Below are positions 126-51,300 of a DNA stretch of 64,000 nt, one piece after another (position 1 is the first letter of the stretch; the number at the start of each line of letters is the position of its first letter). Under the pieces are notes generated by a model. It saw only the letters and a list, made by a program, of their open reading frames with translations, did no database searches and was not told the DNA's origin. Source of the stretch: Thalia democratica (lineage: Eukaryota). Position numbers and translations under genes: made by a program. The DNA lies in the NCBI GenBank assembly GCA_965202585.1, contig CBDBBG010000042.1, positions 1 to 64,000 of the forward strand, read 5' to 3'.

Positions 126-183
126 GGAAAACCCCATCACGTGCTGACTGACATCGAAGAAAACTCAGTGGCTGATAAATCAG
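126..183 (+). CDS. PDZ gene exon (first PDZ seen, partial): GKPHHVLTDIEENSVADKSG
   Basis: tttag acceptor 124-125, donor gtatta, open frame joins next exon. Confidence 0.85.
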
Positions 184-3100
184 GTATTAAAGTTTAAATA
201 AAAGATTAACCTTTGATCAAATATATAAACTTCTGTATTAAATTACAGAAAATATTTTTTATTACAAACAAATTACAAAATGTTAAACATTACAATAGTT
301 TATTAAGCTGATAAATCAGGTAAGTAATCAAATAAAAATTAAAGCTTTTTGTTAAGAAATAAAATAAGAAATTATAAAATTACAGTTTTGGCCAAGAAAT
401 AAATTATGATATAAGTCAAATATTTAGAATAAACGAATAACAGTTGATTAAACTATATTAAAATTAATAAAGAGTCAGGTATAAATAATGAACATATTTT
501 CAAATAAATGCGTTAAATCTAAAAAATTACCAAAATACAGGAATCAAGAATAACGAGGTACTGGCTTCTGTCAATGGACACAGTGTTACGAAAGCTACGC
601 ATAAAGAATGTGTTGATAAAATTAAGTTGGTTTTGATATGGTATTATGTTTGGATGTAAAGTTTTAACGAAATATTATTTTTGAGAAAAAAAAATTATAA
701 GATAGTACGAACTTCTAATTCAACTTATAAAACAAAAAGCATGCATATACTGGTTTATTAATTACTTTAATAAAATATTTTGGTGTAACTTTTAAACTTA
801 AGGCTTTAATAAAAAAAACAAATTATACTTACATCCAAGTCTTGTCTTATAAAACAATTAAAAGGTTTAAAAATAACAAAACAAAAACTTTTTAACAAAA
901 CCGATGAAAAATAACGAAAATTAATAGTAAAAGTATTTTAAGAAAAACATTAAATATTAATCAAAAAAAAAAAAATTGCTACAAACAAGAGTTACAAATA
1001 AAACTTATATAGTTTAAAATAGATTTTGATACAAATAAAAAAACTATTTTACTTAAACTTCAACTTTTTCAGGGAATCAGGAAACTCGGTATCCCTGACA
1101 GTAGGATCCATGTCTACAATGGACACCTTCTACAAACTCAACATCGAAGTAAACGACGAGTTTATTGACAGCTGGCCGGAAGAAACATGTTTCAGCAAAA
1201 TTGACATCGGAGATTTTGTTTCCGCTAGAAGCGCTGCTAGCAACGATGACAAAGAGGTTCGAGTGTTGTTACTAAAAATACCCATGAGTTTTTTTTTTTC
1301 TTTAAATATCAGTAATGCTATATTAATTTTAAGTATTACTAAAAAACATATACATTTAAACAATTACTTAAGTAGAAAGTTTTACTAAATAGAAAATTGT
1401 AAGTTTTTGCTTAAATTCGTCAAAGCTTCATTAACTTTAGTAATTACAGATGTAATGAATTCCTTAGTGGTTAAATATTTTTATTTAGTATTTTGGCATA
1501 GCCACTACAGCAAAACACTACTTTTATAAAATACATCTTTTTGATGTTACGAATTGTATCAAACAGCTAATATGCTTATTTCTACTATAAATTATTCACC
1601 CAGTACATCAAAAATTTTTAATATGTTAATTTATGCATTTCTGTTTAAGGAACACCTACCCCGTTTGTGCCACCTGGTGAAGGACCAACACTCCTACTCC
1701 TTCTACCTGAGAGACGAGGAAGGTGTGCACGTATTAGAGCAAGTTGAGGAGGAGGGATCCGCTTACAAGGCCGGAGTGAGGGAGGGTGACGTCATAATCG
1801 AAGTTAACGGGGTGAACGTTCTGGAGGAGAGCCACGACGAGGTTTGTGTGACGTCATATTTTTTGTGCCATGCTGGTTATTAAAGATAATTATCTAAGTA
1901 AAAGTACATTTAGATTTTCACTATATTGTATATTGGGGTTTGTAAGATATATAAAAAAATATACAGTTATAGTGATATTCTAATTTATAGAGAAGTATAC
2001 TGTATACCATAATAAAAATTAACAAGACTAAGTATTAAGTTATAAGTTAGTTTTCATTGTTATATTAAGTTGATAATAAAGTTTTATATATATCTTTTAT
2101 CTTTTTTGTAAGTAATTAATACAAACAGTCTTAACTAGCTTTTTATCTTTTAGTACATTCTAACAGTTTTCGAGAAAAAATGTAAAACTTTACATAATAG
2201 ATTTTGTAAAAGTTAAAAGCTACTGATTTTTAAGTTTTTCTTTAAGATATTAGTATGAAATAAATGTGTAAGTCTTTGAACTACTTAAAGCTATGGCATT
2301 TACAAAACATTATTCTGGTAAATATGAAAAAGCTAAAATCATTTGAAATGTTGAAAAGTATTTGATTTTTAAAACAATTGCATTTCATTAGTTGAAAGAA
2401 AATATTTAAAGTCACAAAGTTCAACATTATAAATCAAATGCAAACAACAAATTTACTGTAATTTATTATGAAAGGTATTATTGCAAAAACACACCTTAAA
2501 TCAATTAATTATTGTTTGTAATGTAAACAATAGTTTTTGTTATTTTTGTTATAAATATGAAATAATTTTAGTTTAGTCTTAGTTGTTTTCTTTACTTTTG
2601 CATTAAATTCTTATAAAATGCTTTTTTTTTTAAACACATTCTTGTGAAGTTTGTTTTTAATTTTTAATTTTAATTTTTAGCTCATTAAATACTAAGTTGT
2701 GCTAAGTCAAGAATAATAGCTTTATAATTTTGAACTAGTGAACTATTTGAATCCTAACAACAAAAACAGCTATTAAAATATAGGTATATAAATATAACAG
2801 CTATATATACTATCAAAATTTTTTACTTTGTAACATAAATAATGACTTTTCAACTAAGTCGTTTAAATTAAAGTTTTATTTTTATAACATTACCTTTATA
2901 TTGATTAAAGCCCGATCAATTTGTAATTAAGATACCATGTTTATCTTGAAAATGTTAAACTTTAGTTGTTTTTTATTTTGCAATGAAAAATATGAACACA
3001 ACATATAATTTTAAAATAAACACAAAAAGAATATTATGTTGTAGGTAGTAACAAGAATACGCGAAAAGAAGGACAATGTAACATTCTTAGTAGCAGATGA

Positions 3101-6100
3101 AAAAACAAGAAATCACTTTAAAGCTAAAGGAATTGTTATCACTGCTGCATTGTTGAAACATAAAGTTGAAGGTAAATACTAATGCGAATAATTTTTTTAT
3201 GTTTAAATGTAAATTAATGTAATAAATGACTGTTAAAATCTAAATTATAGAAAAATTTAAAAGTTGGCACAAAAGTTTGGCTTATTTTTAATAAGTGCTT
3301 TACCAGACTAAAAAACGTTTAATTATCGATCATTAGTACAACACGTCCTAATTTCCAAAAAAAAAAAGATTTTTTAATAAAGTTGAAGTAAAACCGTGTA
3401 AATGTAGTAAAAAGTACATCAAAAACTTTTAAAGACATTTTATAAATTGCACGGTAGTTGTGATGTACTGTATAAGTAAAAAATTTATTTATAAAAAACA
3501 TAAGACATCAGTAAACAAAGCTTGAAAATGTAAAGTACATGAAAATTCCAAGGACGTACAAACTTTTACTAGATTTTATGAAAAATTAATACAAATAATT
3601 AGTGATCGTAAAAACTATAAAGCATGCAGCAAAGCCGCATAAATTGTTTTTTTACGATAGTATAAAGTAGTAATGTTCTCACGTAATTTTCATTGAAATA
3701 TGTTTCAAAAAATTTAAAATTTAGTCGTGTTACTTTCTTTAAACAGAACTCATGAGATAATAACAAAGAAGTCTGTACTACACAACTATACAATGTTTTC
3801 AAAATGTTGATGGTTAAAAAACAACATCAAAATAGGCAACAAAAAATAATTATCTAAAAACTGCTTTATTTGCTTGTTACAAGCTAATTAATGTTTTTCC
3901 TATCGAGCTAGTTTTAAAACAGTTTTAAATAAGTGTTTTTTCGCATTACAATCCAAACAATCTTTGTTATGACGTCACAGAAGCTTTACAAGCACCATCA
4001 TCAGACGATCAACCGAAGCCTCGCTACTGCCACCTGGTGAAGGACAGGACTTTCGGTTTCCACCTGACAAATGACCAGAACTGCGACAGACCCGGGCAGT
4101 ACGTCAGACAGGTGGCCGAAGGGGGCGTGGCTGAAGTTGCCGGTATCAAGGAAGGTTGGTATTATGACGTAATAATAAGAATAAGGATATTGTAGTTTTA
4201 AGTATTTGTAGTAGCGTGGGTAAAGGAAGTTTAGTATATTATTACGTAGTGGTTTTTAGTGAGATAGGAAGGTTGCAGAAGGTAGTGTAGCTGATATTGC
4301 TGGTGTTGAAAAAGGTAGGTATTATGACTTCAAAGTATAGCTGTTAGTGATATGATTAGAACTGAATGCTAGGTAGAGCTGGTATAACTTGGATTTACGA
4401 AATTAGTAGTTACTAAGACGTATCAATAGTTAGTTTGTCTTAGTTACTCAAGCAGGAGAGAGGCGCTGCTGACATGGCTAGGGTAAAGGAAGGTGATTGT
4501 ACTGATAATTAATAAAAATAAGTGCATAAGTTAAATGACTAAAGTTAGTTTGCTTGTTTTGCTGAAGTTAAGGAAGGTAAGTAGTAATGAGCTGTTAGTT
4601 TCGGTTGCTATAATACCTCTTATTTTTCTTGATTTAAGTTTTTGTTATTATTATTAAATAATAAGGTATAAAATTTTGTTTCAATAATTTTTGTACCGTT
4701 AAAAGTTATCTTAGTATAATTAGTCGCAAAGGGCAGTAGCAGATATGATCAAAGGATCAAAGAAGGTTAATGTTTGTGACTTAGTATCTAAAATATTTTT
4801 CGGACTAAAAAGTAAACAAATCTAGTAAGTACACCAGACTTGAAAAAACCTCTGAGCAAATTAATCTAATTTATAATTGTAGTTAAAAATAGTTGCAAGG
4901 CTAGTTTGATAATAAAAGTAATTATAGGGTCGTTGCTTAGATTTAGGAAGCTTAGTTGACAATAACAGGTGAGTTTTTAGTTAAGGTTAGATAAAAGTAT
5001 GACAGTTTTTTTTTGTGATCCTTTTGTTAAACTTTAAGGTAATAACTTTAATATTGTTTCAGTTTAAATTTAGAAGTAGTTTTGACGCAACAAAACAAAA
5101 ACTCAAACATTTTTAAAACTAACAGGTGACCGTATAATTGAGATAAACTCAACTAACATTGAAGAGAAGAATCATCAAGAAGTAGTTGCAATGATTGTTG
5201 CCAGCGGTAAGGAGGTAAGTGTGTTTTAGCTTAATATTTTTTTATGATCAAAGTTTTCAACTTTTTGTGCAAAGATAATCGACTTAAACAGCTTTTACCA
5301 TAATATATATACTAATCTGCTTAAAAAGTGTTTAAGGTCTTATAAAGTAGTCAACATTAACTTGTTTTTTATATTAATGATAGACTTTGTAACATTGTTG
5401 ATAAATATTCAGTTTATTTTAGTGTCGTTACAACTCTGATTGAAGTACCTCTTTTCACAGGTGAACTTCCTAGTAGTTGATGAAGAAACTGATCTTCATT
5501 ACAAGAACCTGAAAGTTCCAATCACAATGAGTTTTGCTGACCGCAGTCGCTATGACCCCTGCTGAAGGTTTGACACTCAAGTTAAAGTTAATGTACTAAA
5601 TACTATAAAAAAAAGTTTTCAAGATTTAACAAAAAAAACATTTTTTTTGTTGTTTCCATAATATTGGAGAGTGTGTAAATAAATGTTTATTATAAGTATT
5701 TGATTCTTTATTGAGATACAAAAATGGTTCAAGTATTGTACCGCTTGATAGCATCACTTGATCAGCTATTTTTTTATAATCAAACAATTACAAAACAGAC
5801 GACAAGCAATCAGTGGCATCAGAGAAAGCCTCAGTAACTGAATCAGTACACTCAGTAGAAGTACACGCAGAGCCTGAAAAAGTTTGTTAAAAATTTTTCA
5901 ATTTTTTGAAGCAAGTTAAAACGTAAAACTTTTAATATCTTAATAACTTTGCCTAAAATTCAAAGCATCCTTGTGATCTATTTTGTTCAGTTTGTATTTT
6001 TTTAAAGCTTTATCAAAGACTAGATTTGTTTAAAACACATTAGGTTGTAATGTAGCTCTACACTGAGATTTTGTTTGTTGAAACTAAAACGAGCTACACA

Positions 6101-9100
6101 GCTCATTATTCAACTTTGAATACTCATTATAAGCTGCTAGTTACCGCGTGTCTTGTGTGAAGTTTGCTTTTTAACTTCACAGCCGGAGATAGTAGTCGAC
6201 GAACCGGCGGAAGACAAGGAAGACTCTGACAAGGAGGAAGACTCACCGCTCAGGGAGGCAGCTGAAGATCTGGCGGCGGTGGCAGTGTTGAAGGAGGTGA
6301 TCGATCAGGAAGAAGAGGAAGAGGTTGTAGAAGAAGCCGTTGAGGAGCTGAAAGAGGAAATACAGGAGAGGATCGAAGAAGAGTTGGAAGACAAGGTGAG
6401 AGTTTTTTCGGCAAAAGTAGCAACCGTGATTGTGTATAATCTATATAGTGTATAGCAGTAAAATAAAGTTTTTTGATATAAAACAGTGTTGCTCTTACAA
6501 GCTCACAACTGTGCGTGATTTTTGAAAAGCTTTAGAATCACCGAAAACTAAAAACAACAAAAAATTACGCAGGTTGGTGAAGAGGCCGCTGAAGAGATCG
6601 CGGAAAAAGCAGCTGAGGAAATCGTTGAAGAAATGGTCGAGGAAGCTAAGGAAGAGGCCAAAGAAGAGGCAGTCGAAGAAGTCCTCGAAGAGATGAGGGA
6701 AGAGGCGAGAGAAGAAATTGCTGAGGAAATTAGAGAGGAAATCAAAGAGGAGATTAAAGATGAGATCCGTGAAGAAATTCGTGAGGAGGTTAGTTGTTAT
6801 TTGTTTTTTTTTGTATGTCTTAAATAACTTTGTAAACTTCTGATGCTTTAACACAAAAATACTTTATGCTGTAAACAAATTAGCAAGTTTAGTTTTCAGT
6901 TTGCATTCAGAAGTAAAATTAAATCTACTTTTAAATATTTTAGAGTCCTTAGAGAACTCTTCTTAGACGATCTTTATCAAATAAAAATCCCATTTTACCA
7001 AAACATGAACACAACTTCCAGATCATTGAAGACGTCGTGGAGAATGCTTACGAGGACGCCATCGAAGAAAAACGAGAGAGTGAGGAGGAAATGCGAGAGA
7101 GGCTGAAGGAAGAGCTGAAAGAGCAAATGAGAGAGGAAGAAGAACAGCGATTGAGAGAGGAAGAAGAGACGAAAGCGAGAGAGGAGGAAGAGAGGAAAGC
7201 GAGAGAAGAGGAAGAGAGGAAAGCGAGAGAGGAGAAAGAATCCCAGGAAGAGATGATGGCGAGGATCAGGGAAGAAGTCAGGAAGGAAATGGAAGGTTGG
7301 TTGTGAAAAAAAAAAGGTTTTTAAATCAAATTTGCAGTGATTTTGTTTAAAAGCAGGGCTGTTGTATGGCTTTCTTAGATGTAGCGGTTCTAAAATTTTA
7401 ATATTTTGTACTTAATTTGTTACGACTAAATGCATGACATTCTTAGTGTGAGAAACCGTAGAAATCACAAACGCTATTGTACATAGTTGCAAGGTCTACT
7501 GAACAAAAAAAAAACATCTTTAAAAGTTTTTATTTTTGTGTTCATTAGGGCGTGTATTTTTTATGCTCAGTAAAACGAAAGATTGTGTGGAGATTACAAT
7601 AAGTTTTTCTTGCATGTTTCATGTTGTGTTGAGAATTTTTAAACATAAAGTTTGAAATGTCTTAAGTAAATTTGCAAAATCTTAAAGATAAAATTTAATT
7701 TGAAAGTTTTAGAAGTTAGATTTGTGCACTTGTTTTAAAACTTTTTGAATAAATCTTGAATACAACTTTAGTTCAAACTAGCTGCATGAAAATACGTCTT
7801 TATTTAATCTTGTTTCAATTCAATTACTTAATACAGTGATGTATATCTCTTATTTAGAATGAACAGCATGTTTTATAAATGCGAGCTGTTCATTTGTGAC
7901 TTATGTTGATTTCAAACTCAATTATTTTAAAATTGATCGTATTGTTACCACACTTTTCAAAAAAAAACTTTAATTAATTTGATTAATTCTTTACAATAAT
8001 CAACTTCAAGTTTACTGTAAATATTTTAATTTAAATAAAAAAGATTAGTCTAATCAAGAATATTAAGTGAAAATAATCGATAAGCAATTAGTTTTGCCAA
8101 TTATCAGAAAGTAATTATAGCATGTATGATTCAAACATCTACTACTCCATAAGATCTAAAACATAAAAACTTAAGCTATTTAAAAATACTTTTGTATTAA
8201 AGTCTTTTTTACTTAACAACTGATTTTTTCATAGCTATAAACGCTTAATAATGCCTCAATTAAATACAAATTTTTGAAAATACATTCTAGTTTAGATATA
8301 CATTAGTTTAATTTTTAAATAGTGCAAAGTTGTTCAGTAAACTTTTTTGACTTTTTGTTTAGCGACTTTTATTCGTCATTACAACACATTAAGGTTGGTG
8401 TGAAAATTATTTGAAATTAATTTATAGATTTGGCAGTTAGAATTAAGAAAGAAATTTCCGAGTTACAGAATAATTCGTCATATCCTTCACATTTACTCAT
8501 TAAAATGAATATAGCCGGTTTGTAATTTTATCTTGAAAATATTAAACGTAATCTAACAAATCAATTAAATTACTTAAATTCAGAAAAAATAACATAAAAG
8601 CATCCATATTGAAAGTGGTTTGAACTTTTTCTTACCCTTAGCATAGTTAAAAAAATATTTTAAAAAGAATTTAAAAACTCGTTATAACGTAACTACAGAA
8701 AGTTGACACTTTAACACTATTGGATTTTTAGTTGTTTTAAAGGCTTGTAAAATTTATTTCTAGTTTTCTACTAAACTGAAAAATGTCCCCTAAATGCAAA
8801 CTATTTCTCCTAACAGCTGAAAAAGCAGCAGCAGCGATCGCAGCCATCCCAGTGCCCCCATCGCCCACATTGAGCTCAAAATCAACCAACCGTGAAGCTG
8901 CCCCCAGCAACGCAACCAGCAACGCCCCTAGCAACGTGACCACTCCCAGAAAGGAGGAACCCAAGGTGATCCAACCCCAGGTTTCCATCAACGAGGTGAA
9001 ACAGGTGCAGCTGAAACCAGTGAACCGTGTCCAGGAGACCCCGGATCGTCATGACGACCAAGCTGAGGAGGAGAACCCGAGACCCGTGAGGATGTCGGTC

Positions 9101-9672
9101 AGGGACAGGATGGCCATGTTTAACGGAGGCGGAAAACCGAGGTAATTGTAAAAAAGTGATTAATTTTTACACACGAGCTAATCTAAATATTCATTTATAA
9201 ATAAACCAAATTATTGTCACATAAGTATATAATCAGTTTAAAATTTGTACAGCCAAAAATAAAATAAATGAATTGTAATAAAACTATTTCATCGACAATA
9301 ACTCATAACTTATAAAAAGAATAAAACTGAAAAAAAATATCTTGAATTCGGCAAAAACTGTAATTAACTTCTTTTAAAACGCTTATAAGTATAAATTGAA
9401 TATTTAAAAATTAAAACATAATACGTTGTTAAAAGTTTTTGGAAAATTCTTCGAACAAAAAAAAATAATTTTAAATAATCAGGTACACCCCACCAAAAGT
9501 CGATTCCCCCGTGGTCGTCAACGGCAACGTCAACACATTGGAGAAAGTGACGGAGGCTGTCGTCAAGTCGCCTACTGTGACGTCATCAACTAAGAAGAAG
9601 AGACCCTTTACGTTCGCCTCAGCCAATCAGATGAGCTTCAAGATCGTCGAGTCGACGCCCACGATCAATTAA
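126..9672 (+). CDS. Multi-PDZ scaffold, NHERF/PDZK1 family (5' end outside window), spliced gene of 14-15 exons
   Basis: Phase-compatible GT-AG exons translate to PDZ motifs: PRLCHLVKDQHSYSFYL..AGVREGDVIIEVNGVNVLEESHDEVV, PRYCHLVKDRTFGFHL..AGIKEGDRIIEIN, and NHERF-type post-PDZ segments FLVADEKTRNHFK and FLVVDEETDLHYK. One frame break near 5541. Confidence 0.9.
541..625 (+). CDS. PDZ gene exon: GIKNNEVLASVNGHSVTKATHKECVDKIK
   Basis: cag acceptor, donor gttggt, PDZ VNG motif, phases 1 to 2 match neighbours. Confidence 0.85.
1073..1256 (+). CDS. PDZ gene exon: ESGNSVSLTV...DDKE
   Basis: tttttcag acceptor, donor gttcga, inside ORF 1026..1388. Confidence 0.85.
1650..1841 (+). CDS. PDZ gene exon, second PDZ: EHLPRLCHLVKD...EESHDE
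   Basis: Clear PDZ translation inside ORF 1554..1883, donor gtttgt. Confidence 0.92.
3045..3171 (+). CDS. PDZ gene exon: VVTRIREKKDNVTFLVADEKTRNHFKAKGIVITAALLKHKVE
   Basis: tgtag acceptor, donor gtaaat, NHERF-like PDZ C-terminal extension. Confidence 0.9.
3981..4154 (+). CDS. PDZ gene exon, third PDZ: PKPRYCHLVKDRTFGFHL...AGIKEG
   Basis: cacag acceptor, donor gttggt, PDZ motif. Confidence 0.92.
5126..5214 (+). CDS. PDZ gene exon: GDRIIEINSTNIEEKNHQEVVAMIVASGKE
   Basis: ctaacag acceptor, donor gtaagt, PDZ motif. Confidence 0.92.
5461..5567 (+). CDS. PDZ gene exon VNFLVVDEETDLHYKNLKVPITMSFAD..., with apparent +1 frame break near 5541
   Basis: ttttcacag acceptor; as written the frame hits TGA 5563-5565; removing one C gives AVAMTPAE and the phase-1 end needed by the next exon. 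Confidence 0.75.
5799..5881 (+). CDS. PDZ gene exon: DDKQSVASEKASVTESVHSVEVHAEPEK
   Basis: acag acceptor, donor gtttgt, open in phase 1 to 0. Confidence 0.75.
6183..6395 (+). CDS. PDZ gene exon, acidic region
   Basis: cacag acceptor, donor gtgaga, 71 codons, inside ORF 6153..6455. Confidence 0.85.
6573..6788 (+). CDS. PDZ gene exon, Glu-rich helical region
   Basis: cgcag acceptor, donor gttagt, 72 codons. Confidence 0.85.
7022..7295 (+). CDS. PDZ gene exon, ER/K helical region
   Basis: ttccag acceptor, donor gttggt, phase 0 to 1. Confidence 0.85.
7157..7228 (+). repeat. Coding tandem repeat, 3 x 24 bp, EEEE(T/R)KAR
   Basis: gaggaagaagagacgaaagcgaga-like unit three times in frame. Confidence 0.85.
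8428..8517 (+). CDS. Candidate symmetric (phase 1-1) exon DLAVRIKKEISELQNNSSYPSHLLIKMNIA
   Basis: tttatag acceptor, donor gtttgt, 90 bp open frame that continues the preceding helix. Confidence 0.5.
8817..9141 (+). CDS. PDZ gene exon, Ala/Pro/Ser-rich tail ending MSVRDRMAMFNGGGKPR
   Basis: ctaacag acceptor, donor gtaatt, inside ORF 8783..9145. Confidence 0.85.
9483..9672 (+). CDS. PDZ gene last coding exon, ends ...KIVESTPTIN-stop
   Basis: atcag acceptor, phase 2 matches, GC-rich open frame, TAA 9670-9672. Confidence 0.85.
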
Positions 9673-15305: not shown

Positions 15306-15380
15306 CTAGTTTTCTTTTTTCAGATTTAAAATTGCTGCCTGTAGTCTCTTTACGTGGCCGATTCGATAAACTCCAATATC
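15306..15380 (-). CDS. DGKH: DGK last exon, SAM C-terminus [24 protein letters not shown]-stop
   Basis: tag acceptor, TAG stop 15306-15308, SAM motif. Confidence 0.9.
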   Translation of the reverse strand, partial: DIGVYRIGHVKRLQAAILNLKKEN

Positions 15381-18300
15381 CTATAATATCATTAAACAGT
15401 TTTAAATATAATACAATTGAATTTTATTTTGTATCATGAAATATTACAAACTTCCTAAATTAATATTTTCATTAACAATATATATCAACCTACTTAATAT
15501 TGGAATTTTTAGTTTCTCATAGATTATGAAAATAAAACAAACAAATAGAATTTTGCAGCATGAAATACTATAAACTTTTTAAATTAATATATATTAAACT
15601 TGAGATATTATTTTTTCAATGAATCTTTGGTTTCTTCTAGATTTTCTATTGTAAAAAAGTTAGCGACATATAACATATGGATACTTAATATTCCATACAT
15701 GCTTTATTTAGAAACACAAACAGTTTTATAAACAAACAAACTTTTACATCTTTTTCTTGAAATTTAATTAATTTTTAACACAAAAAAATAAGTAGACAAA
15801 CAAACTTTTATATCTTCTTCTTGCAATTTGAGTAATTCTTCACCCCTTATATCGTTCCGCATGAACGGTTCCTTGTACATTTGAAGTTGAACTTTTTCAA
15901 GCCAATCACAAACCTCTCTTGTTCCCCATTGTGCCACTGAACAAAGTAATAATTAAAAAATATTTAGTATTTGTTTTTTTTTTATATTTACAATTAATAC
16001 TTATCGAACAATTCAAGTTGAATTTTTTCAAGCTAGTCAAATAATAAGCGTGCCCCGTTGAGCGACTGTAAAGTTAAAACAAAAAAATGTAAATTGAAAA
16101 TCTAACACAATACGATTCTTATTTTTTATATTTATTCTAATGATACATTATTATAATGGTACAATTAGTGTTGTTTTAAGTATTCTAAGAAAGAAACGAT
16201 ACTTTATATTAAATTTTGCAACCAAATGTAAATTTGCTCTCGGAACAATTTTTATTTGTAGTTTTTACTGAACGTATTTATTACATTTTTACAAATAAAC
16301 CGCCTCAGTAACTTTAAATTACAATGAGATATAAAGTAATGGGATAAATTGTTGATATAATCAGTGTTATTTCATTTATTTGTTCTCAAAATAAAACAGC
16401 GCTTAAACTGCAATTTTGTTTATAACAATCTTTACGAACTCTCCGATATATTTTTATTCATAGTTTCACTTAGCTTAACTACTGCATGCTTATAGTTAAA
16501 CTGTCTCAGTAATTTTACGTTAAACTGAGAGAGAGATTAATACAATGAGTACACAATACTTCTACTTGTGGTATGATATCTTTACTTGAGATATCTATTG
16601 CACGTCTATAGTTAGACTGCCTGAGTAAATTAATATTTACGACAAGAAAACTGTTGCAACCAGATACCATGCTCATGTTTGATATTTATGATTTTATTTA
16701 ACTAATGTTTATTGCAATTTTTTTTTTGTGCAAACTTCCCAATACTTCAAGAAAACCCTATTTAGTTTTTTTTAAATACATTCTTCTACTATTTTTTAGT
16801 AGAAGAATGTATCAAAAATATGAGTTTGATTGATGAGTTTAATTTTTTTTAATATATTCTTCTACTATTTTTTACATATTTTTAATGTTTACATATTATC
16901 ATCATTATTTACTAGGCTTGAAAGCTAAAACTTAATGAGGTCACTTGAAGTTGTTTTCAGTTTTTATTTAATATATTCAAATTTTTATATTTTCAGTATT
17001 TTATATAATTTACTTTGGTTTTTCATAAGTCACTTGTAAACTAGAAGAAATTTTAGAGATTATCTGTTAAAATATTAGAATTTACTGAAAAAATAGTTAT
17101 CTTCTAACTTCCAATAAAAGGAATAAAGGAAAATGTTTATTTAAAAAGTAATTTTCAACTGATAACTAAATAATTAGTTAAACAAAAAATAAATAACTCA
17201 ACCCGTGTTGAAGGAATAAATTAAATTTCTTTTTTCTTAAAGTTTAGTCGATATTTTAATAGTTATAGTTTTAGTGTGGATAAAGACAGCTACTTTAAAA
17301 AGTGAACTTAATCTAATGACAATAATTTTAATTGTATACAACTTACCATTTGTGAACTCAATGTGTTGATTATTTTTCTTTTTTCTGCCGAGCAATTGTG
17401 ACGGCATTTTGAATAAGGTCGAGAAAAACCCACTTGATTTGCTACTGCTAGATTGGACCATTGTGCTTGATTTATCATTCTGTCGAAATAAGTTTTATGT
17501 AGTAAGTTCAAATTTTCTTTTAAGAACTCATTCTTCATATTGAGCAGATGTTTTAAAAAATAGTTTGATATGAAAGTAAAACTAAAAGCAAAAAAAAACT
17601 GCTTTATTTTTAGTTTAAATATTTATTATAAGCACAATATCATTTGTAATTGAGTTTCTTATTACTTAAAAGTGTCTTACATAAAACAATACATCAATAA
17701 ATTTAGAATAAACATTTTATCAAGTAGGAAAAATCTTATAAATATTTATTACTTAATTTTACGTCAAACCAACTTTATTTTGAGTTGCTTGCGAGAGACA
17801 CCTGACGTTTGAAATTTTTTCAATTTCCAGCTTCAGCCAAGTTGATATCTTGCTCGCTATTTGGTCGTCTATTGGCTGAAATGAAAAAATCGTGAAAATA
17901 AGCTTGTGGAAACCAAAACAGTTACAAAAAGTTTTATAAACACTGAAAACAGTTGATTTAACTACCTTTTGTGAATTATACTTTATGCTCCTGAAAATAC
18001 AGAGTTTAACAGCAGAAGTTTTTAAGCACTACAAGACATAAACATCAAAATAAATAAAAACAGCTATCAACTCATCAATTAGAGTTGGATTTCTAACTTC
18101 CACCCAACTTTATTTAAAACACTTTAATACTTTCTACTGGCAATAAAAACAATTTTAACTTTTTTTATAATCTTTTAAGAATTGTGTAAAAAACCGTTTT
18201 TAAATATTCACAAGAAAAACAAATCATAAGTTATGTCAAGTAGAATACAAAATCAGATATCAGATAACAAAACTGTTTCAAACCTGGTCGTCGTCGTGCA

Positions 18301-21300
18301 GCAACCCGCCCAGCTTTGCAATCAAACTGGTAACCATGGCAACCAGCTCGACCAGTGGGTGGCAGTCGGTGTTGTGGGGGACTATTTTGTGCACGTTCGT
18401 CACAATCTCGTTTGTGACGTCACCGACGTGATGACGTAACTCCTCGTTACGCTCCATCGCTTCGTGGATGCTAGAGGAAAAAAAAAAACATTCATTTTAA
18501 CTTTTTAACACAAAAAATAATGTTAAAACTTACAATGAAGTGTATAAAGGTTTAAAGGAGTTGATGCCGCCCCCTTACTTTGGGAACTTTTAGGTTAAAA
18601 ACCGTCAACGACATATAATAATTTTCAATCAACAATAAAATAATATAAGTCATTGAGCTGATACTAATTGTTTATTAAACTTCAACAAATAACTATCTAC
18701 TTCGTTATAACATCAATAACATTTCAACTCATAAAACAGAATTTTTCAAAGGAGTTGATGCCGCCCCTTACTTTGGCAACTTTTGGGAACTCAAAATTTT
18801 ACGTAAATAAAACTAATACGAACCCGGTAGCAACCACAGACACGGTTTCAACAAATTCTCCAACCACGACAGTTTCAGCATCGGTAATTCCCCTACTAGC
18901 CGAGGATTGCCCGGCAGCTTGCGATTGGTTGCCTAGCAACAGGTGTCGGTTGTCAAGCTGGTTGCTGGGTCGGTTCTCCATCCACGACTTGAACACGTAG
19001 ACTCACCTCTGAAAAAACTTTTTGTGAGTTTTGTGAAAAAACTTTTTGTGAAAAAAAATTTTTGTGAGTTTTGTTAAAAAATTTTTTTGTGAGTAAAACT
19101 AAAAGACAAATAGTAACTTTGTTAGCCTTTATTAAAATAAAGTTAAGTTCAAAGCATTTAATTTTTTGTTTCAATAAGTTAAAGCATAATTGCAATTTTC
19201 AAACCTAAATCGGATTTTCAGTAAATCTATAGGGTTTTTTTTACAAAAATTAGCTAAAATCAAACTGATATTAAACTGACCCTATCTCTAGCGAGCATCT
19301 TAACAGTATTCTTGTGCTGTATGGTAATTGTACCAGGGGGTTGAAGCCAGGCTTCTCCGTCGACTTGAACCGGAATCGCTTCCTTGCCTGTTGTTACGTC
19401 ATAATATGTTTACAAATTAAAGCTAGAACATACATGACTATTTACTTTTTGTTTGAGCTTTTAAGATAGAAGTTATCAGCTTTGTTTTAGGATTTCAAGT
19501 AAGTTGAACAACTTAATTGCTATATTATACGTAACAATGCTTTTATAAACACAGAAGTATATTTTATAAATTAAAACTAGAACATACGTATTTTTTTAAA
19601 TAATTAGAACTGATTATCGTTGTTTTAAGATTTTGATCTTTTAACGACTTTTTTGCTAACTTTGTATTTATAAATACTGTATACTAATTGAATGACATTA
19701 AAGATAACGTTTTAAAACATGTCAAAAATTTGCATAATTTCATTTTAAAATCAATAGTTATATCACCTTTTTGAGTCACAACAAAATGCAATGGGCAAGC
19801 ATTAGTTTATTTAAACTTTGAAATCTAATTACCTTAAAACAAAAAAAAAAAAAACTTTTTCTTAACTAATTATGTACTTCGAAAAAAATGTGAATAAGCA
19901 ACTTAAAAAAAATATATATTTTGTAAACATTCAGTATTTTTATTACTTTAGAAGTTACATAACAATATTTGGTCTAAAAGCCAAAATAAATGAGCTTTCT
20001 AATAGCTGTTAAACGTCAGATTATTTGTTTTAATTCACCAACTTTATTTTTTGAAAACAAAACTCTTGGTTAAAATGATTCATTTCGTAAGAACTACGTC
20101 AGAAAATTCTATTTTGTTCTGTTTGTAAATAAATACCAATATACAAACAAATTCATTGAGTTTTAAACTATTTATTACGCAACAGTAACGTCACAATACT
20201 CTTTTTTTACGTTTTTGGAAAACACCAGGAAAAACGCAATTTATAATTCAAACTAACAGGCTGACAATACCACTTTTAACAAGCAATAAAAATTCATTGC
20301 TTTAATTTGAAATTTTTTTATTAGTGTTGCTTAACATTTGCGTCAAAGCTAAATTATGACATGCTATAAAAAAGCACGAGTTTATTTGATAGTGAAACTG
20401 AAATATAAACGAGCTGGAATTATAAGTGATTTTAATTAAAAATCAATGAAAATTCACAGCATATTACTTAACTTTAATGATCAAACATATTTGAGTATAA
20501 AATGTCGTATTTAAGAACTTTTTACTACAAAAATAAAAATATTAATAAATTAACTGAATACACACACGTTCTAATATTTAATAAAACTCAATTTTAAAAA
20601 CAATAAAAGCTCATATTTATTAAAATTTAAAATAGGAAATTATAAAACACGTAACAGTTTATATTAACCTTATAAATATTGTTTAAAGTTTTTATTGTAA
20701 AATATGTTTTTCTGATCTTTAGAATTTAATTTTTTATAAAGTTTATCACGTAAGTCATATCACGTGTTTTCAAAATTATTTAAAAAACGTAGACTACTTT
20801 AGTATTTATATGTTGTATACTTTACTTTGGAAACGAGTTTATTAGTATAAACATTTATTGTTTGATAGTTTCCAACGTTTAAACGTAATAAGTAATTCAT
20901 AAAACTTAATAATATTTAAGTTCCCTCATTAAATAAACCTTTAGTTTTTCTCAAAGTTAGTTAATTTAACCTTATTTTTACTATATTTATTAATAATGTA
21001 AGTTAGTAAATTTGTAAAACAACGTTAATAAAGATACATATTACTTTCTTGAAAATTAAGTACTCACTTTACTGAAAAAAATGAATTTTCATCATAATTA
21101 ACAATTAACAATATATAGGATACCATTTTTAACCTTAATTTTTTCAGTCTAAACTTTAACAGTTAGTATTTACTTAAAAATATAAAATATTTCTACAAAC
21201 TAAACTAAAATTTAGCTAAACAAGTTCAAATAAAAGATAACAAAACTTTAGTTTTTTGCATCAGTTAAATAGATGAAATCTTAATCTGAATAACACAAAC

Positions 21301-30300: not shown

Positions 30301-33300
30301 TAGTAATAAAAATAATATAGCAAGTAAAAGATAAAATGATAGGAACGTTTTAAGCAAATGTTTTAATTTTTCACTTGCTTACAAAAGGAGATATAATAAA
30401 TAATTGCAGATTGAACAAAAACTAATTTAATTTTTTATTTTGTATGAGTACAATGAACTAACGTTGCAGATTGGAGGACTTGTTGGGGCTGATTTGAATG
30501 CAGCATGTTGGATATTTGATCGGATACCGTCGATTCACATATTTGTAGTTCCTCATTCATCTAAATTAAATAAATATACAATAAGTATTATTTACAATAT
30601 AAAAAAACAACTTATTTTTGAATCGTTTACTAAGTTACAATGTTTAGTACATATCTTCAGAACGAAATAAAGAACAAAGCAAAAATTTAGAGAATCACAC
30701 AAAAAAAAACACATAGTGACGTTTCAAATAAAAATGAATAATTTTAGTTAGCCCATTCTAAAAACAACTTATGTACAAGTCAACTTATTTTTGCTTTGTT
30801 TGTTCTTATATTTGGTTTTATTTTGTTGTTATTTTTTGTTATTAATTAGCGGTTTTGTATAATAAGTATTAAATATAATAACTAGCATGTTCGTTGTTTG
30901 ATTACAAACTGTTGACTTACATATTTGTAATTCCTCATTCATCTAAACTAATTAAAAACAAAATAATGTTTGATATCTTATCAAAAACTAATGATCACAT
31001 GTTTGTAATTCATCTGACATACAAAAGCAAGTAACACTTTGAAAACATATATACTTTTTTTAGTATGAAATTTATTATTGATCTTCATACGCTGTTATTA
31101 TTATTTCATAAAAAAGGCATCATCAGAGAATATTTAATTACAAAACGTTTACACTTTCACAAATTTAAAAACAAAAAAACATACGTCCTGCTTGCTTGCT
31201 ATTTGGTTAGTTTTCTTCTCTTCAGCGCCCTTTGGTGGCTCGTAATTCACATCCCTCTCATAAGTCAGTACGCTCCATCTGTGTAAAAATTTTGTAAGTA
31301 GTATTTATAAGCAAACGTGTCCAATAAAAATTGTTAGTAAAACTTGAAACTGCCGGACCAGTCTGTTTGGCAAACGCTATCTTTTATTTCTGCTTAAAAT
31401 TACTATCGATAATTAAAATATGGTAAAACTTATCTAAACTATTTGTCGCAACACTAAAAAAACAGTGTCAGGTTTTAAAACTTTCTGATTTTGCCAAACT
31501 AGTGCCTTTCAACAACTATTCATGCTACCCACACAAAACACATCAACAAAAACAAACAAAACAACCAACCTGTCCAGCATCTTAACACTCGCCCTCTCGC
31601 ACCTCTGCACTATGACGTGAGCGGTGACGTCATCGTCGCACGTGTTTCCCCACCCCATCACCTGAGCGAGGTCGTTGCCTGTTCCGAGTGGAAGGACGCA
31701 GACTCTCATCTGGAAAGAATAAAGTTTGATAATGTAGTATATTTATTACTATTTATATAAAAAGTTGCTCCAACAAAAATGAGGTAATATTTAATAACTT
31801 TTTTATTACGAAAACTCTCATCTGGAAAGAAAACATAATGAAGTTTTAAAAACATTAATTTTTTTTTCAAATTTTACGTGCGTTCTCAATAGGGGGGACC
31901 GATAAAATAACCAAAGAAATTATTAAATGGTTGTCCAGTATTTTTGATAGTATTTTAACTACAATTTTAATTACAATTTGAGTAATAAGTTGCTCTAACA
32001 AACAGGTGGGAGTATTCAAGGATTTTTTTATTACTAGTTTATTTTATCATATAACTTAGTTGTGTTTCCATCCCTGTTACTATAGGGAGTATGCGTACTC
32101 TTATCTAAAAGGCAAATAGGTATTTAACTCACACTACTGAAATGCAAGTTTTACAGTTATTGCACGTGTACAAAAGAGTTGTATTAATTGTTTTCTAGAC
32201 TAATTAGTTTTTATTGTTTTCCAGCCCCGTCATCAGGGCTAAACCTTCGCCTGTACCCAATGGTGTAATGTATAAAGTGAAAGCTTTTTTGAGGTTTTTA
32301 ATGATTTTTGTTCAAAACTCAAGGTTTTTTAGTCTAAATTGTCAAGTTCCAGGTTTTTCCAAGACTCCAGGTTTTATGCAACCCTGACATACATGTAACC
32401 ACTGGACAACCGTTTAATAATTTATTTAGTTATTTTATCGGTCCCCTCCCCATTGAGAACGCACGTAAAATTAAAAAAAAAAAAGTTAAATTTTTCAATG
32501 TTTTTAATTAGAAAGTCAACGCAACAAACTTTTAGAATATTTTTCGTGTCACTAAAAATACTTTTACAAAACTGTATTAGATTTATTTTTAATTACAAAA
32601 AAAATCATAATGTGCTAACGTTAAGCAGTATAACTTAGTAACTTATAAGAATTTCATATAACTTCTATTTTTGTAAAACAGTACTTTATACTAAAATTAC
32701 GATCACTGTGTATATACTTTACCTAAAACTGGGTTTAAAATACTTCTACACTATACCTACTTAAGTTGTACTTTTTTTGTTATATAAGTTTAGAGACCTT
32801 TACGAATTTATTACATAATCCAACTTAAATTGAACTTATTAAATTGAGGATTTTTTAAATGCATAACAGCGAATAAAATTTCATATTCCATTATATAATA
32901 ATAACAAAAAATGAGTTTTGAGATCTAAAAAGTAGTTTGATATCAAATGATTTTATCAAATTAATCATTTTGACAGCATACAACAACAAATAAAATTAAT
33001 AATCAGTTATTAGATTACAATGAACTATTTTTTCTCACTTCCTGTTATAAAGTACAACTTAAAGTAAATAATAAAATCCAATTACAATTTGATAATAAAT
33101 GCAACAGAATATGATAAACTTCCTGTGAGACATTTTTTATTTTATTTTAAAGCTGACTTGTTTGGAAATTTAATAACTTAAAGACAACCGATCGTTAAAT
33201 TAGGGCTGAATAAAAATTGTAAAGAAGTAATTACTTCCAGAGAATTACATTTGAATTAATCATATGACTTTAAGTAGGCGTTTACTTTAAAACTAAATAA

Positions 33301-39300: not shown

Positions 39301-42300
39301 ATAATTTCATAAGTTTTTTTTCCTTAGATTGCTAGTGATGAAGTCTATATCATAAATTTTATAAAATTCCAAGTAAAAAGTTAAACTATATAATAGGTTA
39401 GAATAAATTCGGTTAAATAAAGTTACTTACACTTATTTATTGTTTAATATTTATTTTAATACTAGTTTTTTGAGTAAACAACCTTTTAAAGTAAATTTTG
39501 TATAAATTGTCAAGTATATTTAATTAAGATAATATCAAATACTTTAAATAGCACTATTCTTTGAATCAATAAAGCTTTTTATGCAAAAACAAATAAAAAA
39601 CTTAATAATAACACGCAACGAAGTTAATTTTTTATAGTAAACATTGAAAAATATATAGAACTTAAAGTTCATCAGTGTACATCAGATTTTAAAATTGTTC
39701 AAAATAAAACCCAGTTGATTAGTAGATTAAAATAAAGAAAATCACGCTAATACAAAGATAAAAACTTATAATAAACTTTTTAGTTTAGGCAGTTTTAACT
39801 TTAATCGACAAAATAAAACAACTTTTCTGTGAAACTTAATTTCAATCCAATCAGTTTGTTTCAGAGTTTAAAATTGTATAACAAACAAATCTAATTGATT
39901 ACTAAAAAATAAAATAGCCCGGCTTGCAAACGAAACCAAAATTCTAAAATCAATTTTTCGGTTCGGACTTTAATAAAGATCTAGTTTAAAGTTCGAATAA
40001 ATTAAAACAACCGTAAGATTACCGCTCGAGAAAGACAACTTTTTATCATTTGTTTTTGAGCTCAAAACTTTAAAAGAACCTAATTAGGAAAAAATATATA
40101 TATTACAAAAAAACGTTTAAAAAATTCAAATCAATTTAGTAAGTCTTTATTTCGAAATCTCACAAAAGCTCTTAATAAAGAAAACACAAAGCATATTACC
40201 GATAATCAAAAATCTAATTAATTCTAACCGCAGACCGTTGACATTTAAACCAAATATTAAAGAAAACGAAATATAACACGCACACCAAACAAAAACATCC
40301 TGCTACGGTATTAGATTTATTTCCAATTCATCACTTTGGGAAGCTTCGAGATAAAAAGTATGAATTTCAATCATTATTCTTGGAAGCGATTTTATAGGTT
40401 GAAAAGTTTTCGATCAAATTTACAAAGTATCGTTCACCAAATTTGCGAAGAAACTAAGTTTAGTTTTTTAGAATTAGAAAAGGTTTCACGTAACTTTCAC
40501 GTTTTTATGCTTTACTCAAGCATTTGGTAAAACGATTTAATTCACTTTTGTGTTCGAAAACAAAAATTCCAACTTTAAATACATTTTGTACAACTATTTT
40601 AGATCTTTTAAAGCAACTTACTGGAAAAACTGGACTTTTACTGTTACGTTACATAAAAATACTCTTATCTCGTTTTCAGGTTAAAAAAAATAAAGTAAAA
40701 ATAAACATCGTTCTTTTTAAGTTTTTAATTTAAAACACTTTACATAAGTCATTGTATAAGTTTTTAAATTTTAAACTAGAGCTTTACACACTTAAATAAA
40801 ACACCGGAAACCGTTTTATAAGCTCTATACTCTTTTGACTTATGTATATTTAAAAAATTGTTTTTCGTTTTATGGGTACGAAAAAGTAAATGGTGATACA
40901 ATTTTCAAAGCCTTTACTTTGTTTTACTTTTACATTTACAATTATCAATAACTTTTTTAATACGTTGTATTTTTTAAATTAGTAAAACAAAAAATTGTAG
41001 AGTCTATTAACAATTATTTATAATTACTATTAAATTAGTCTTTCTTTAAAATATTTAACTATAAATTAAAAAATATATGTGTAATTAATAAAAAACACTA
41101 TATGCTTTTTAATGTATGTTCTTTTAAAAATATCAAAAACAAGTAACAATGTTATCTTAAATAAAAAAAAAAAGAAAAATTAAGTTGTTGTAAAGACTTG
41201 AATCACAGTGTACTAAAAGATAAATTTAATTAAATAAACAGCTCAGTTTCAGTCAAGTTGCAAAGAATCAATTGTTGTTGAGAACACTTGTAATAAATAC
41301 GATTAAAAATACTCGTGGGAAAGTTTTTGTTTCGAACAGGAGTGCATTAAGTTTCGGTGAAAATTGTGCGAATACTTGGTAAATTATATTTTTCCACACG
41401 TATCTTAGTCTTTTTGTGTAATTTAAAAAGCTATTTCAATGTGAAATCAAACTAAGTAATATATAGTATCCTTTAAGTAAGCTGTTTAGTGTGATATCGC
41501 ATGTGTGAATAAACACAACTCTTTCCTGCGAGTTTTAATGATTTTTTTTTGTTTGAAAGACATTATAATAAATTTAAACAAAAGTTTGATGTTTAAATTA
41601 CCGTTTAATTTATATAAATGTATAAGTGAAAGTGATAAAAGTAAATTAAAAAAACTAAAATGTTGCTACAAACATTGTGGAGACTATTATAATTAAACAC
41701 ATAAATATACCAGTCATGCCACCACCATTACCACTAGAATGGGAATGATTATAAGTAGAAGGTGTCTTTAACCACCCATTTTTCTATGAGATATTTATAG
41801 TTAAACATAAAAAAATTGTTATTACAAGTAACCATTTGAATCATAGACAAATATGACAATAATTGCATTAAAGTCGGAAGCAACACTGAATGTCTACAAC
41901 TATCCATAGTATTATGAGGTAATTACAGTTAGACACATATACTGTATAACTATTATCTTTAAAACACCATACAGCTACCCGTTTTACTACTAAATAAGAT
42001 AGTAAGATAATATATTAAAACTGAATGTCTAAAACTTCTAATAGTTTTACGATAAGTATATAAAAATGTTATCAATCTGTTATTACGTCATACTGACCGT
42101 TCGAATCGTAGGAATGTATCGAAGTTGGCGGTAGAACTGAATGTCTGCAACTGCCGAGTGTGCACCTCTGAGGCATGTGCTGTTTGCATTTGTCGTGTAC
42201 CTGAGTGAAAATGTAATAATAAAATTGAATAACTAAAAAATACTGAAACATGAATAGGCATCATAATTGAATCATATACTGTTATTTAGACTCTAAATAT

Positions 42301-48300: not shown

Positions 48301-51300
48301 GTACTGTTTTTTCTACTTTTCATTACGTATTTTATTTTGAGTAAATTCTAAAAAAACACTTTATTTTACATCTATGGAAGATATAGAAAATTAATACTTT
48401 AAAGTGGTTATACCAGATGACTTAATAAATCAAAGTGTTCTAAACTAAATAAGTGTAATTTAAAAAAAATAAAGTAATACAGGGTTGCCACTTGTTTTTC
48501 AAAAATTTTTCAAAGTTTTCCAAATTTCTTCCAGGTTTTTAAAAGTTCACATTTTTTGGTCTATTTTTAGATTAAAGTTAAGTTTAAGGTAAGATACTGT
48601 GTTAAATAGTATAAAAACATTGAAAAGATACTGTAAAGCTACTTTAAATATGTTAAAAAAAACATTTGATGATGACAAAAGTTTTTTATTTATATGATAG
48701 ATTTTTTGAGTCAAATCGAAATTTTACTACTAAGCATGTGAAAATTGTAAAAATTCCAAGTTTTTTCAAAACTTCCCAAATTCCAGGTTTTTCCAGGTTT
48801 TTTTTTTGCCTAAATTGTCAAATTCCAGGTTTTTCTAGGTTTTTCCAGGATTTTAGGTAAAGTGGCAACCTTGGTAATAACAAACACTTGTAATCACCTA
48901 TTACTTTTTAAAGACTTAATTGTAAAAGTTGACCTAATTAAAAAAAAAAATTATGTTTATAGAAATTATAGAAGTCTTTAAAGTTATTACGTCATATTTA
49001 CTAAAAATAAAAATCTTGCATCAAAAACAAACTTCCTTAACAGATTTGTTTTGAGTTTTTCTCAAAATAACAGGGCTCAAAACACAAAACTACGTTAAAG
49101 TATTCATAAAACACGCAATTTACAAAAAAAAATACCAATTTTTTATTTCCAATACAACTTTGTTACCACTTTGTAATATTTTTAATAAAAACAAAAAATG
49201 CTGGAAAAAAAAGCAAAAAAATACAAACAACACCGATGTTTTAAGAAAAATTTTAAATCGAGTTTATTTAAACTTATTTTAGAGTTACGCAACAAACTTA
49301 AATTTTATTTGTTTGAATAATCAATTTCATAATTGACACTGATTTAAAGCCAGTTAAATATATTTCAATTTTCTGAGTTGTCAGACAATTGTTTATATTT
49401 TAAATACAGAAAATAATTTATCACGAATTAATGCAAGCATTTATTCTTGGAGTTGAACTCGTGGCCGTCACTATGAATATTTTTCAAACGAAAAATTTGA
49501 TTTAATTTACTGCATGTGTTTTTTTTACAACTTACTAAGGCTGATTGTCGACATTAATTTTGTGGAAATAAATTTGAAATAATTTTTTGTGACAATTTTT
49601 TTTCCATCAAATAAATGTTATTTTATATTTAGTTACTTGTTTTATTTTAATAAACATAGGGAATGAGTATATTTTTAAATTAAATTCTAATAAGCGTTTA
49701 TGTAACGTAAATATTATTACTTATAAGAAAATGTATTTTTGAATTAAATTATAATAATCTTTAAGAAATCTTCATCAATCATTAATAACTTATTTGTCAA
49801 AAACGAAGTAACAAAACCAAAATAACTAAATTAAGGTCATTATTTATAATTTGAAATTTCTACAGTATATCGAATTCCAATTATTTTCATATCAATCTTT
49901 TCTCTTAATTTTCAATATAAAAGCATATGTTTCCTAATTTAGGTACGGACAATTTAATGTTTTTTAAACTGTATAACATTTTTTTATTTGATTTATGTTG
50001 CTTCTGAAAAGGCTTGATGTAAATAATTTTTGTTTTTTGTTATTGTCTTTTAAACGGTTTTAACTATTATGAATTGGAAAAAAAAAATAACAAAACCAAA
50101 GATAAGGCACAAAAATTGGCCAAATAGCTTTTTAATTAAAACCTGGGAGAGTTATTACTTTATCAAAAATTCTAAACTAGTTTAGTACTCTTTCTCTTAT
50201 TTAGTAACAAAGCCGCTCGGCAAAATTAAAACTCATTTAAATAAAAGGCAATTTAAGGGTAACACTGGTTTGAAGTAAAAAATATTTATCTTACAGAAAA
50301 AAAACACGACTAAAATAGTTTAAGTAAAATCTAACAATTAAACTAAATTATAACAAAATAAAAAACGCTTTGGTTTTATTAAACATGGAGACTTAGTTAT
50401 AGGGGTGTGATTGATTTATAAATCATATCTAAGTGTTCATTTCAATCACTAGTAAAAAAAGTTAACTGTTTTTCATATTAAAATGGATGAAGGTAGTCTT
50501 CCTCTTTTGATTTTAAAGACCGGACAGGATTGAATTTTAGATAAACAAAATAAAAATGGTAGAAAACCATTAAAATATCATCAGATTCTATTTGAATAAG
50601 GAATTGAAAATGTTTGTTTTTTAATAAACGAAAGATCTCTTTAAAGTGCTTGTATAAGACTGTGACTGATTTTTTTTTAATGGTTCTACCATTTTTATTT
50701 TGTTTTTCATATTGAAACTTAATTTTTTTGAAAAGAAAAGCATTGTATCTTGGTACAAATGAACACTAGACTGCACCACACGACCGCCAACAACAGTGGG
50801 ACCTTGTTTCTTCCCAGTTATAATCATAATTTAATTTAACTATTTAATTAATTTCGTCCAAATTAGGGCTCATCGGGCATTCATAATCACGATGAACCAA
50901 AAATTTCAGTCAAATGACTTTCTTAATTTGAAACTGATAACAGGTAATTATGAAATCATTAACATGGTTCATTTCTATTGAATGAATATAACATTATACT
51001 AAATATTATACATTCAGTTATGAGATCAGAATAAAATTATGACGTCACTAACCCCGTCCTCCCTCTCGACGACGTTCTTGCCGACGCTGGAAAGATTGGA
51101 CCACTTGCAGGGAGAAACTGCCTTGCTAGCACACCTCTTGTGGGCTTTGAACGCGCAAACTGTTAGAAACAAATTAAAACTGACAAAAAAATTTAAAAAT
51201 GTAAATTAGTTAGTTAAAACTATTAGCTAAACAGTGTTTATTTTTAAATATTAGTAAAAACAAGTTAAAGAAATGATTAAAACTATCAACTGGTTAGTTG

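Follow-up and report, generated by a model that had tools for sequence, protein, structure and literature searches.

An exact CRE palindrome over the coding exons and intron edges of two salp genes, a candidate bZIP dimer site

A 64,000-nt stretch of the genome of the salp Thalia democratica (GenBank assembly GCA_965202585.1, contig CBDBBG010000042.1, positions 1 to 64,000 of the forward strand; hereafter the window) carries many copies of the palindromic octamer TGACGTCA, the cAMP response element (CRE) read by CREB/ATF proteins. We conclude that this octamer is a real second signal laid over two genes, independent of protein sequence and of codon usage. The signal is exact, two-fold symmetric, all-or-none and near saturation; relatives retain it, and two amino-acid changes in a kinase coincide with it. 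From these features we infer a reader and a function. With its flanks (RTGACGTCAY), TGACGTCA may be under selection as a binding site on double-stranded DNA for a bZIP dimer of the CREB/ATF type, and may thereby mark GC-rich exon islands, a reading to which we give a probability of roughly 0.45. By position the octamer is here not a promoter element, and it is probably not a recombination hotspot.

A pattern search of the window found ten exact copies of TGACGTCA, starting at 1787, 1849, 3970, 9578, 18415, 25096, 26915, 28411, 31625 and 51040. Dinucleotide shuffles of the window give 0.31 copies on average and at most 2 (100 shuffles). The full palindrome takes in ten of the window's 13 GACGTC cores and every TGACGTC heptamer. 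The window is 26% G+C, and the G+C-rich islands that make up 13% of it contain all ten copies. By our gene model, six copies are coding, three lie just within introns beside firm borders of exons (each 4-8 nt from a splice site) and one, at 25096, is uncertain. Four belong to a PDZ gene and six to a kinase gene. The two genes and the ten copies are as follows.

1073-9669, + strand: PDZK1/NHERF-like gene with two PDZ domains and a Glu-rich tail, assigned from Pfam and from the solved NHERF3, NHERF1 and PDZK1 domains
15845-60298 (from at least 60298 down to about 15845), - strand: type II diacylglycerol kinase gene with two C1 domains, a catalytic domain that is split, an accessory domain and a SAM domain
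1787-1794, + strand gene: TGACGTCA in the PDZ1 exon, 1650-1841; GGT GAC GTC ATA, encoding G D V I
1849-1856, + strand gene: TGACGTCA at intron positions +8 to +15 past the donor GAG/GTTTGTG of the PDZ1 exon
3970-3977, + strand gene: TGACGTCA at positions -11 to -4 of the PDZ2-exon acceptor at 3980/3981, TTATGACGTCACAG/AAG (CAG/)
9578-9585, + strand gene: TGACGTCA in the last coding exon of the PDZ gene; GTG ACG TCA TCA, encoding V T S S
18415-18422, - strand gene: TGACGTCA in kinase exon 18284-18470; GGT GAC GTC ACA, encoding G D V T
25096-25103: TGACGTCA in a 97-bp GC-rich island within a kinase intron; exon status unconfirmed
26915-26922, - strand gene: TGACGTCA in kinase linker exon 26831-26942; ATG ACG TCA TCG, encoding M T S S
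28411-28418, - strand gene: TGACGTCA in kinase exon 28357-28522; GTG ACG TCA CTC, encoding V T S L
31625-31632, - strand gene: TGACGTCA in kinase catalytic exon 31570-31709; GAT GAC GTC ACC, encoding D D V T
51040-51047, - strand gene: TGACGTCA at intron positions +6 to +13 past the donor GGG/GTTAG of C1-region exon 51053-51159

An in-frame acceptor lying 12 nt further downstream could serve the PDZ2 exon equally well, in which case the 3970 motif would be at -23 to -16. These data bear out much of the original prediction, which had listed ten exact copies, expected fewer than one per 64 kb and divided them into seven exonic and three intronic sites. The count and nine of the positions stand, with the first start corrected from 1786 to 1787; the shuffles agree with the expectation; and the three intronic sites are indeed at borders. 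The exonic sites number six, with 25096 uncertain.

The excess of TGACGTCA is seen in coding sequence and at intron edges. Under a dinucleotide model, the 4,770 nt of coding sequence hold six copies against 0.12 expected, and the 1,453 nt contained in 22-nt intron edges hold three against 0.011 (P=2e-7), a 270-fold excess. In the 57.8 kb of deep intron and intergenic DNA there is one copy against 0.21 expected. The further statement of the original prediction that no copy lies deep in introns is therefore true and uninformative, since 57.8 kb of DNA at 24% GC would be expected to contain so few. When synonymous codons are shuffled such that the protein and its codon usage are kept, 0.23 coding copies are expected in place of the six observed. 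The expectation is 0.22 when shuffles are pooled by class of GC3 (G+C content at third codon positions), 0.93 when they are confined to each exon, and 0.10 when codon order is shuffled; six copies were not reached in any of the 2000 shuffles of each test. Agreement with a codon-shuffled expectation, which would have spoken against the prediction, is thus contradicted in the window.

The enrichment is also specific to this word. In a scan of all k-mers of the coding sequence against synonymous shuffles, TGACGTCA is the top 8-mer (z=12.8), TGACGTC the top 7-mer and GACGTC the top 6-mer. Six of the eight peptide positions able to encode TGACGTCA do encode it (P~2e-8). One of the two unused permissive positions, RDVN, would put a purine on the 3' flank, and the other overlaps an X-box-like palindrome. 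The octamer has two stop-free reading frames, and each is used at three coding sites. Together, the 24 variants with one mismatch occur 3 times (2.97 expected). They are not enriched, and the exonic enrichment is therefore confined to the exact word. One variant, TTACGTCA, lies 10 nt from the 18415 site, and the forms expected from CpG decay, TGATGTCA and TGACATCA, are both absent from the window.

It is barely conceivable that composition, CpG, codon usage or selection on the DV, VTS and MTS peptides produced the excess as a side effect. The sites do lie in GC-rich, high-GC3 exons. However, the shuffles that keep protein and codon usage never reproduce the count, and the ratio of observed to expected CpG is 0.83-0.90 in exons, edges and introns alike, so that CpG behaviour offers no explanation for the excess. 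In addition, three or four of the sites are non-coding, and a contig that is not from a salp (L003) encodes the GDVII peptide without TGACGTCA. On the strength of the shuffles and the compartment CpG ratios, we reject codon usage, CpG and composition as the cause.

The symmetry of the signal extends beyond the octamer. The left flank is a purine and the right flank a pyrimidine at ten of ten sites, giving RTGACGTCAY, and all 20 half sites read R-TGAC. The chance of this flank pattern is 0.53^20 = 3e-6. RTGACGTCAY is the classic palindromic site of bZIP dimers, and just 256 of the 65,536 possible octamers are palindromic. A word that is both a palindrome and a textbook bZIP site is what one would expect a dimer on duplex DNA to read, and the same properties would be a coincidence for a protein that binds single-stranded RNA. 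The bZIP site family is also found around exons more widely. Of the ten ACGT cores found no more than 35 nt from an exon end, eight are part of T[GT]ACGT[CA]A octamers, as compared to 4 of 119 in deep intron (Fisher 1e-8). Octamers of this form are CRE, PAR and hybrid bZIP-dimer sites, and the eight at exon ends comprise three CREs, four TGACGTAA hybrids and one TTACGTAA. The four hybrids are located as follows.

4165-4172, + strand: hybrid TGACGTAA at donor +11 of the PDZ2 exon
17759-17766, - strand: hybrid, TGACGTAA in the sense direction, at donor +8 of exon 17774-17875
19394-19401, - strand: hybrid, TGACGTAA in the sense direction, at acceptor -14 to -7 of exon 19277-19387
42083-42090, - strand: hybrid, TGACGTAA in the sense direction, spanning the donor (GAC/GTAA) of exon 42087-42200

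Altogether, at intron edges, donors have seven copies of the motif or the hybrid beside them and acceptors have two. Additional half sites within exons run 5:0 in favor of sense ACGTCA, a count that is confounded by avoidance of the TGA stop codon.

Several sites can be followed in other organisms, as near-identical and related sequences are present in marine plankton metagenomes. The PDZ1 exon of a relative is found on a TARA Oceans contig (L001) and on a second metagenome contig (L002). It differs from the exon in the window at 24 of 192 nt. Twenty-one of the differences are at third codon positions (33% of those positions), and there are three amino-acid changes. The sites at 1787 and 1849 are both intact on both contigs. 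The block GTTTGTGTGACGTCATA at the 1849 site is identical in L001 and L002, similarity ends 2 nt past the motif, and in L001 a stop codon follows the motif. The site at 31625 is intact in a closer relative (L018, ~95% identity). When contigs of two organisms are compared with positions 1-6000, no difference falls inside the three motifs among the differences listed (463 more exist). The listed differences flank those motifs (1709-1758, 1865), and divergence is low, so the comparison has weak power. Word-index protein searches with exons 3995-4153 and 18284-18469 gave no match, and a search of Joint Genome Institute (JGI) metagenomes with the PDZ1 exon gave just distant PDZ proteins at 43% identity or less, none from a salp.

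At two kinase sites the word coincides with a change in the protein. In the catalytic exon, at 31625, the salp has CDDDVT, and the homologues from other species (13 of 13) have CDD[D/E], then T or A, then Q, H or N. In the linker exon, at 28411, the salp has DQKVTSL (GTG ACG TCA), as opposed to DQKLASL (CTG GCC TCA) in the orthologue on contigs L019 and L020. In PDZ1, GDVIIEVNG is ancestral, as in the human NHERF3 PDZ domain. Thus, the proposal that the octamer shapes the peptides holds at two of the three sites where it can be judged (31625 and 28411) and fails at 1787, where the peptide is ancestral. The orthologous kinase gene on L019, a JGI metagenome contig of 45% G+C, is 64% identical to that of the salp in the catalytic exon and 45% identical in the linker exon. 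A copy of TGACGTCA is present at L019:1527-1534, 32-39 nt upstream of the acceptor of the catalytic exon, and two TGACGT half sites (L019:1719-1724 and 1739-1744) are within 40 nt past its donor. Judging from this contig, the signal may not be limited to AT-rich salps.

We postulate that RTGACGTCAY is selectively maintained over GC-rich coding exons and over the first and last ~5-15 letters of introns, and that a CREB/ATF-class bZIP dimer reads the word on double-stranded DNA. The bound word would mark exon islands amid very AT-rich introns. Plausible actions include exon-centered chromatin states or polymerase pausing, either of which could aid exon recognition. A stronger form of this proposal is a DNA-level exon code of this lineage, in which a CREB/ATF-type bZIP dimer on exact RTGACGTCAY, within or right next to GC-rich exons, would help to define these exons among long, AT-rich introns full of repeats, by way of chromatin state or polymerase pausing, and in which selection fixes synonymous codons and even alters amino acids. 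We consider this stronger form possible, with the odds against it. No bZIP gene is found in the 64-kb window. In full-text searches of the literature, TGACGTCA was found reported neither from salp exons nor as a splicing enhancer, and the Salpa genome paper treats G-quadruplexes and repeats, not TGACGTCA.

Several observations weigh against a bZIP dimer on DNA. Sites for transcription factors usually tolerate variants, whereas the exonic enrichment is of the exact word only. The sites are placed within exons and close against splice sites, just as would be expected of a splicing enhancer read in RNA. All four intron-edge hybrids read TGACGTAA on the sense strand, a hint of polarity in a sample that is too small. 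Only about one quarter of the exons contain TGACGTCA, making a general requirement for exon recognition impossible. Retention in relatives, at three of the three sites covered, has a joint chance of ~0.03 and is modest support. Lastly, the exon borders are inferred from homology, reading phase, splice consensus and conservation.

The alternatives that place the reader in RNA take account of much of this. UGACGUCA on the pre-mRNA could be an exonic and intronic splicing enhancer, at which an RNA-binding protein helps GC-rich exons that have weak GTTnGT donors and long AT-rich introns. Donors in these genes are mostly GTT(T/G/A)GT and not GTAAGT, and the sites are confined to exons or to positions 4-15 nt from splice sites. 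The sense orientation of the hybrids fits, as do the donor-side copies, which are where U1-recruiting factors bind; factors bound downstream of a donor recruit U1. For a single-strand reader, however, it would be coincidental that the word is exactly palindromic, has symmetric R..Y flanks and is the same as the canonical bZIP site, and the variants found at intron edges are those of the bZIP family. As a rule, splicing enhancers are short, degenerate sequences, and here the one-mismatch variants are not enriched. We therefore regard an RNA enhancer as unlikely, and we favor the DNA-level bZIP reader over it. It is very improbable that self-complementary copies pair with each other in one pre-mRNA, looping out long introns and joining the marked exons. 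Such pairing requires self-complementarity, exactness follows from base pairing, and there are several copies per gene (4 and 6), some at intron ends. Yet the copies at 1849 and 3970 bracket an AT-rich coding exon, 3045-3155, and their pairing would promote its skipping. Most introns are without a copy on at least one side, the R..Y flanks are often non-pairing (G..T, A..C), and a single genome-wide word suggests a common protein reader. We reject a bridging of the intron by 1849 and 3970, as exon 3045-3155 lies between them and is required by the reading phases of the flanking exons. A transposon target-site duplication as the origin of this pair is rejected as well, since the same exon separates the two copies.

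Other alternatives invoke processes of the genome. Sequence-biased repair or gene conversion could favor the exact word over near-matches in GC-rich DNA, leading to accumulation without function. The all-or-none pattern with usable positions saturated, and the tolerance of amino-acid changes that make the word, fit such a drive. The 270-fold excess in AT-rich intron edges looks instead like local purifying selection, as does the loss of similarity right past the intronic motif in the relative, and we know of no octamer-specific repair system of this kind in animals. We consider this drive highly unlikely. Hardly more can be said for the suggestion, part of the original prediction, that promoter-type motifs mark exons as open-chromatin or recombination sites and thereby unify the GC3 mosaic and the edge duplications. 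On this account, CREB/ATF-bound hotspots like M26 would, through GC-biased conversion and break repair, create both the high-GC3 exons and the edge duplications. The M26 heptamer ATGACGT is present on at least one strand in 8 of the 10 sites. Atf1 binds ATGACGTCAT as a homodimer, and among fission yeast hotspots those with the palindromic ATGACGTCAT form the hotter class (PMC2396409). The median GC3 of the eight exons that bear or adjoin the motif is 0.73, as compared to 0.54 for the 26 others (Mann-Whitney p=0.003), so the predicted link to GC3 is found. Several of the highest-GC3 exons are free of TGACGTCA, however, and GC drops sharply at splice sites, with no decay over conversion-tract lengths. 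The edge duplications are real too: such echoes are found at 8 of 34 exons, and no control on the opposite side has one. Their frequency is the same beside exons with the motif (2/8) and beside the remaining exons (6/26), and the predicted association between motif and echo is therefore not observed. Gene conversion tends to wear away active hotspot motifs, yet TGACGTCA is conserved and near saturation of usable positions, so the hotspot idea fits poorly and stands only a slim chance. The GC3 mosaic is real, as are the echoes. The window lends no support to the proposed unification. The term promoter-type does not suit the positions either, since no site is promoter-proximal; every one lies in an internal exon or at the border of one, at distances of up to tens of kb into the gene.

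The GC3 mosaic and the echoes can be described further. In the PDZ gene, the AT-rich exons 3045-3155, 5128-5220 and 5470-5547 have GC3 of 0.24-0.35. They contain no motif and are missed by the scan for G+C islands. The GC-rich exons of this gene have GC3 of 0.66-0.73 (0.66-0.70 for 1650-1841 and 3995-4153). An echo consists of a diverged splice site plus ~20 exon letters in the adjacent intron. Examples on the - strand are downstream of exon 22732-22890 and ~110 nt upstream of exon 31570-31709, and one acceptor echo is also found in the related contig L018. CCAGGTTT occurs 10 times in the window against 0.5 expected, and related TTCCAGGT words are enriched too. These words probably belong to duplicated splice-site arrays.

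The island around 25096 has exon-like splice signals on both strands. On the - strand, there is a candidate 36-nt frame-preserving cassette exon at 25104-25139, with the 25096 site starting 7 nt past a GT. On the + strand, the site starts 8 nt past AAG/GTAAATG, which resembles a 5' splice site. Facing arms that resemble 5' splice sites, AAGGTAAATG and TAGTACCCAT, flank the site within 25085-25115 and produce a larger imperfect palindrome. The candidate cassette exon opens with ATGACGCAAT (25104-25113), similar to a C/EBP-ATF composite site and beside the full CRE.

The coding model comprises 34 in-frame segments (4,770 nt), built from homology, open frames, AG/GT borders and continuity of reading phase, with homology searches run exon by exon. 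The PDZ2 exon has a weak PDZ match in Pfam (E=0.021, below threshold), and the 5' ends of both genes are outside the window. In the kinase accessory-domain exon (23046-23248, - strand), the reading frame shifts by one base at 23211. The segments 23212-23247 and 23046-23210 each encode conserved kinase sequence and are mutually out of register, due to either an assembly indel or a real frameshift. X-box-like palindromes, GTAACCATGGCAAC and GTTGTCATGGCAAC, are present at 18330-18343 and 28447-28460, in two kinase exons that bear CREs. Two such matches (up to 3 mismatches) against 0.95 expected in the window are within chance. A fixed spacing between CRE and X-box-like palindrome is rejected, since the distances are 82 and 39 nt and the order is opposite.

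If our interpretation is correct, TGACGTCA would be among the clearest cases of a second, sequence-exact code over the genetic code. One word of 8-10 letters would fix synonymous sites, coincide with amino-acid changes and hug splice sites, and either a classical transcription-factor site or an RNA reader would be tied to the recognition of exons in an animal genome that is rich in AT and in repeats. Synonymous mutations can destroy the sites, which makes the idea directly testable. For annotation, the word would be a strong indicator of exons in this genome, and it would bias measures of codon usage and of the ratio of nonsynonymous to synonymous substitution (dN/dS).

Known systems resemble this one in part. 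Splicing enhancers share the location of the sites described here, within exons or no more than ~15 nt from splice sites, and they too overlap coding sequence and constrain synonymous positions. Known splicing enhancers are short, degenerate and strand-specific, whereas the window has one exact palindrome of 8-10 nt with no enrichment of one-mismatch variants. In yeast introns, and with the GT/AC repeats of teleosts, complementary intron ends bridge splice sites. The likeness is in self-complementary sequence near both kinds of splice site. In contrast, the window has one fixed octamer that is mostly exonic and unpaired across single introns.

The CREB/ATF system provides the closest match in sequence: the octamer is identical, the R/Y flanks fit RTGAC/GTCAY, and TGACGTAA and TTACGTAA belong to the same bZIP family. 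Classical CREs, however, are located in promoters near transcription starts, often as half sites and few per gene. The sites in the window lie tens of kb into genes, within internal coding exons or at the edges of splice sites; nearly all codon-compatible positions are filled, and they coincide with amino-acid changes. The M26/CRE hotspots bound by Atf1-Pcr1 share the ATGACGT core and the palindromic ATGACGTCAT class, and M26 itself is inside a coding region, that of ade6 (PMC2396409). In the window, conservation and saturation run counter to erosion, and there is no association with local duplications. Finally, Stergachis and colleagues reportedly described, in 2013, transcription-factor sites within coding exons, termed duons. 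There, as here, a DNA-binding motif overlaps codons and biases the choice of codon and amino acid. Duons are diffuse, involve many factors and have small effects, whereas the window has a single word that is enriched 25-270-fold and reaches into the edges of introns.

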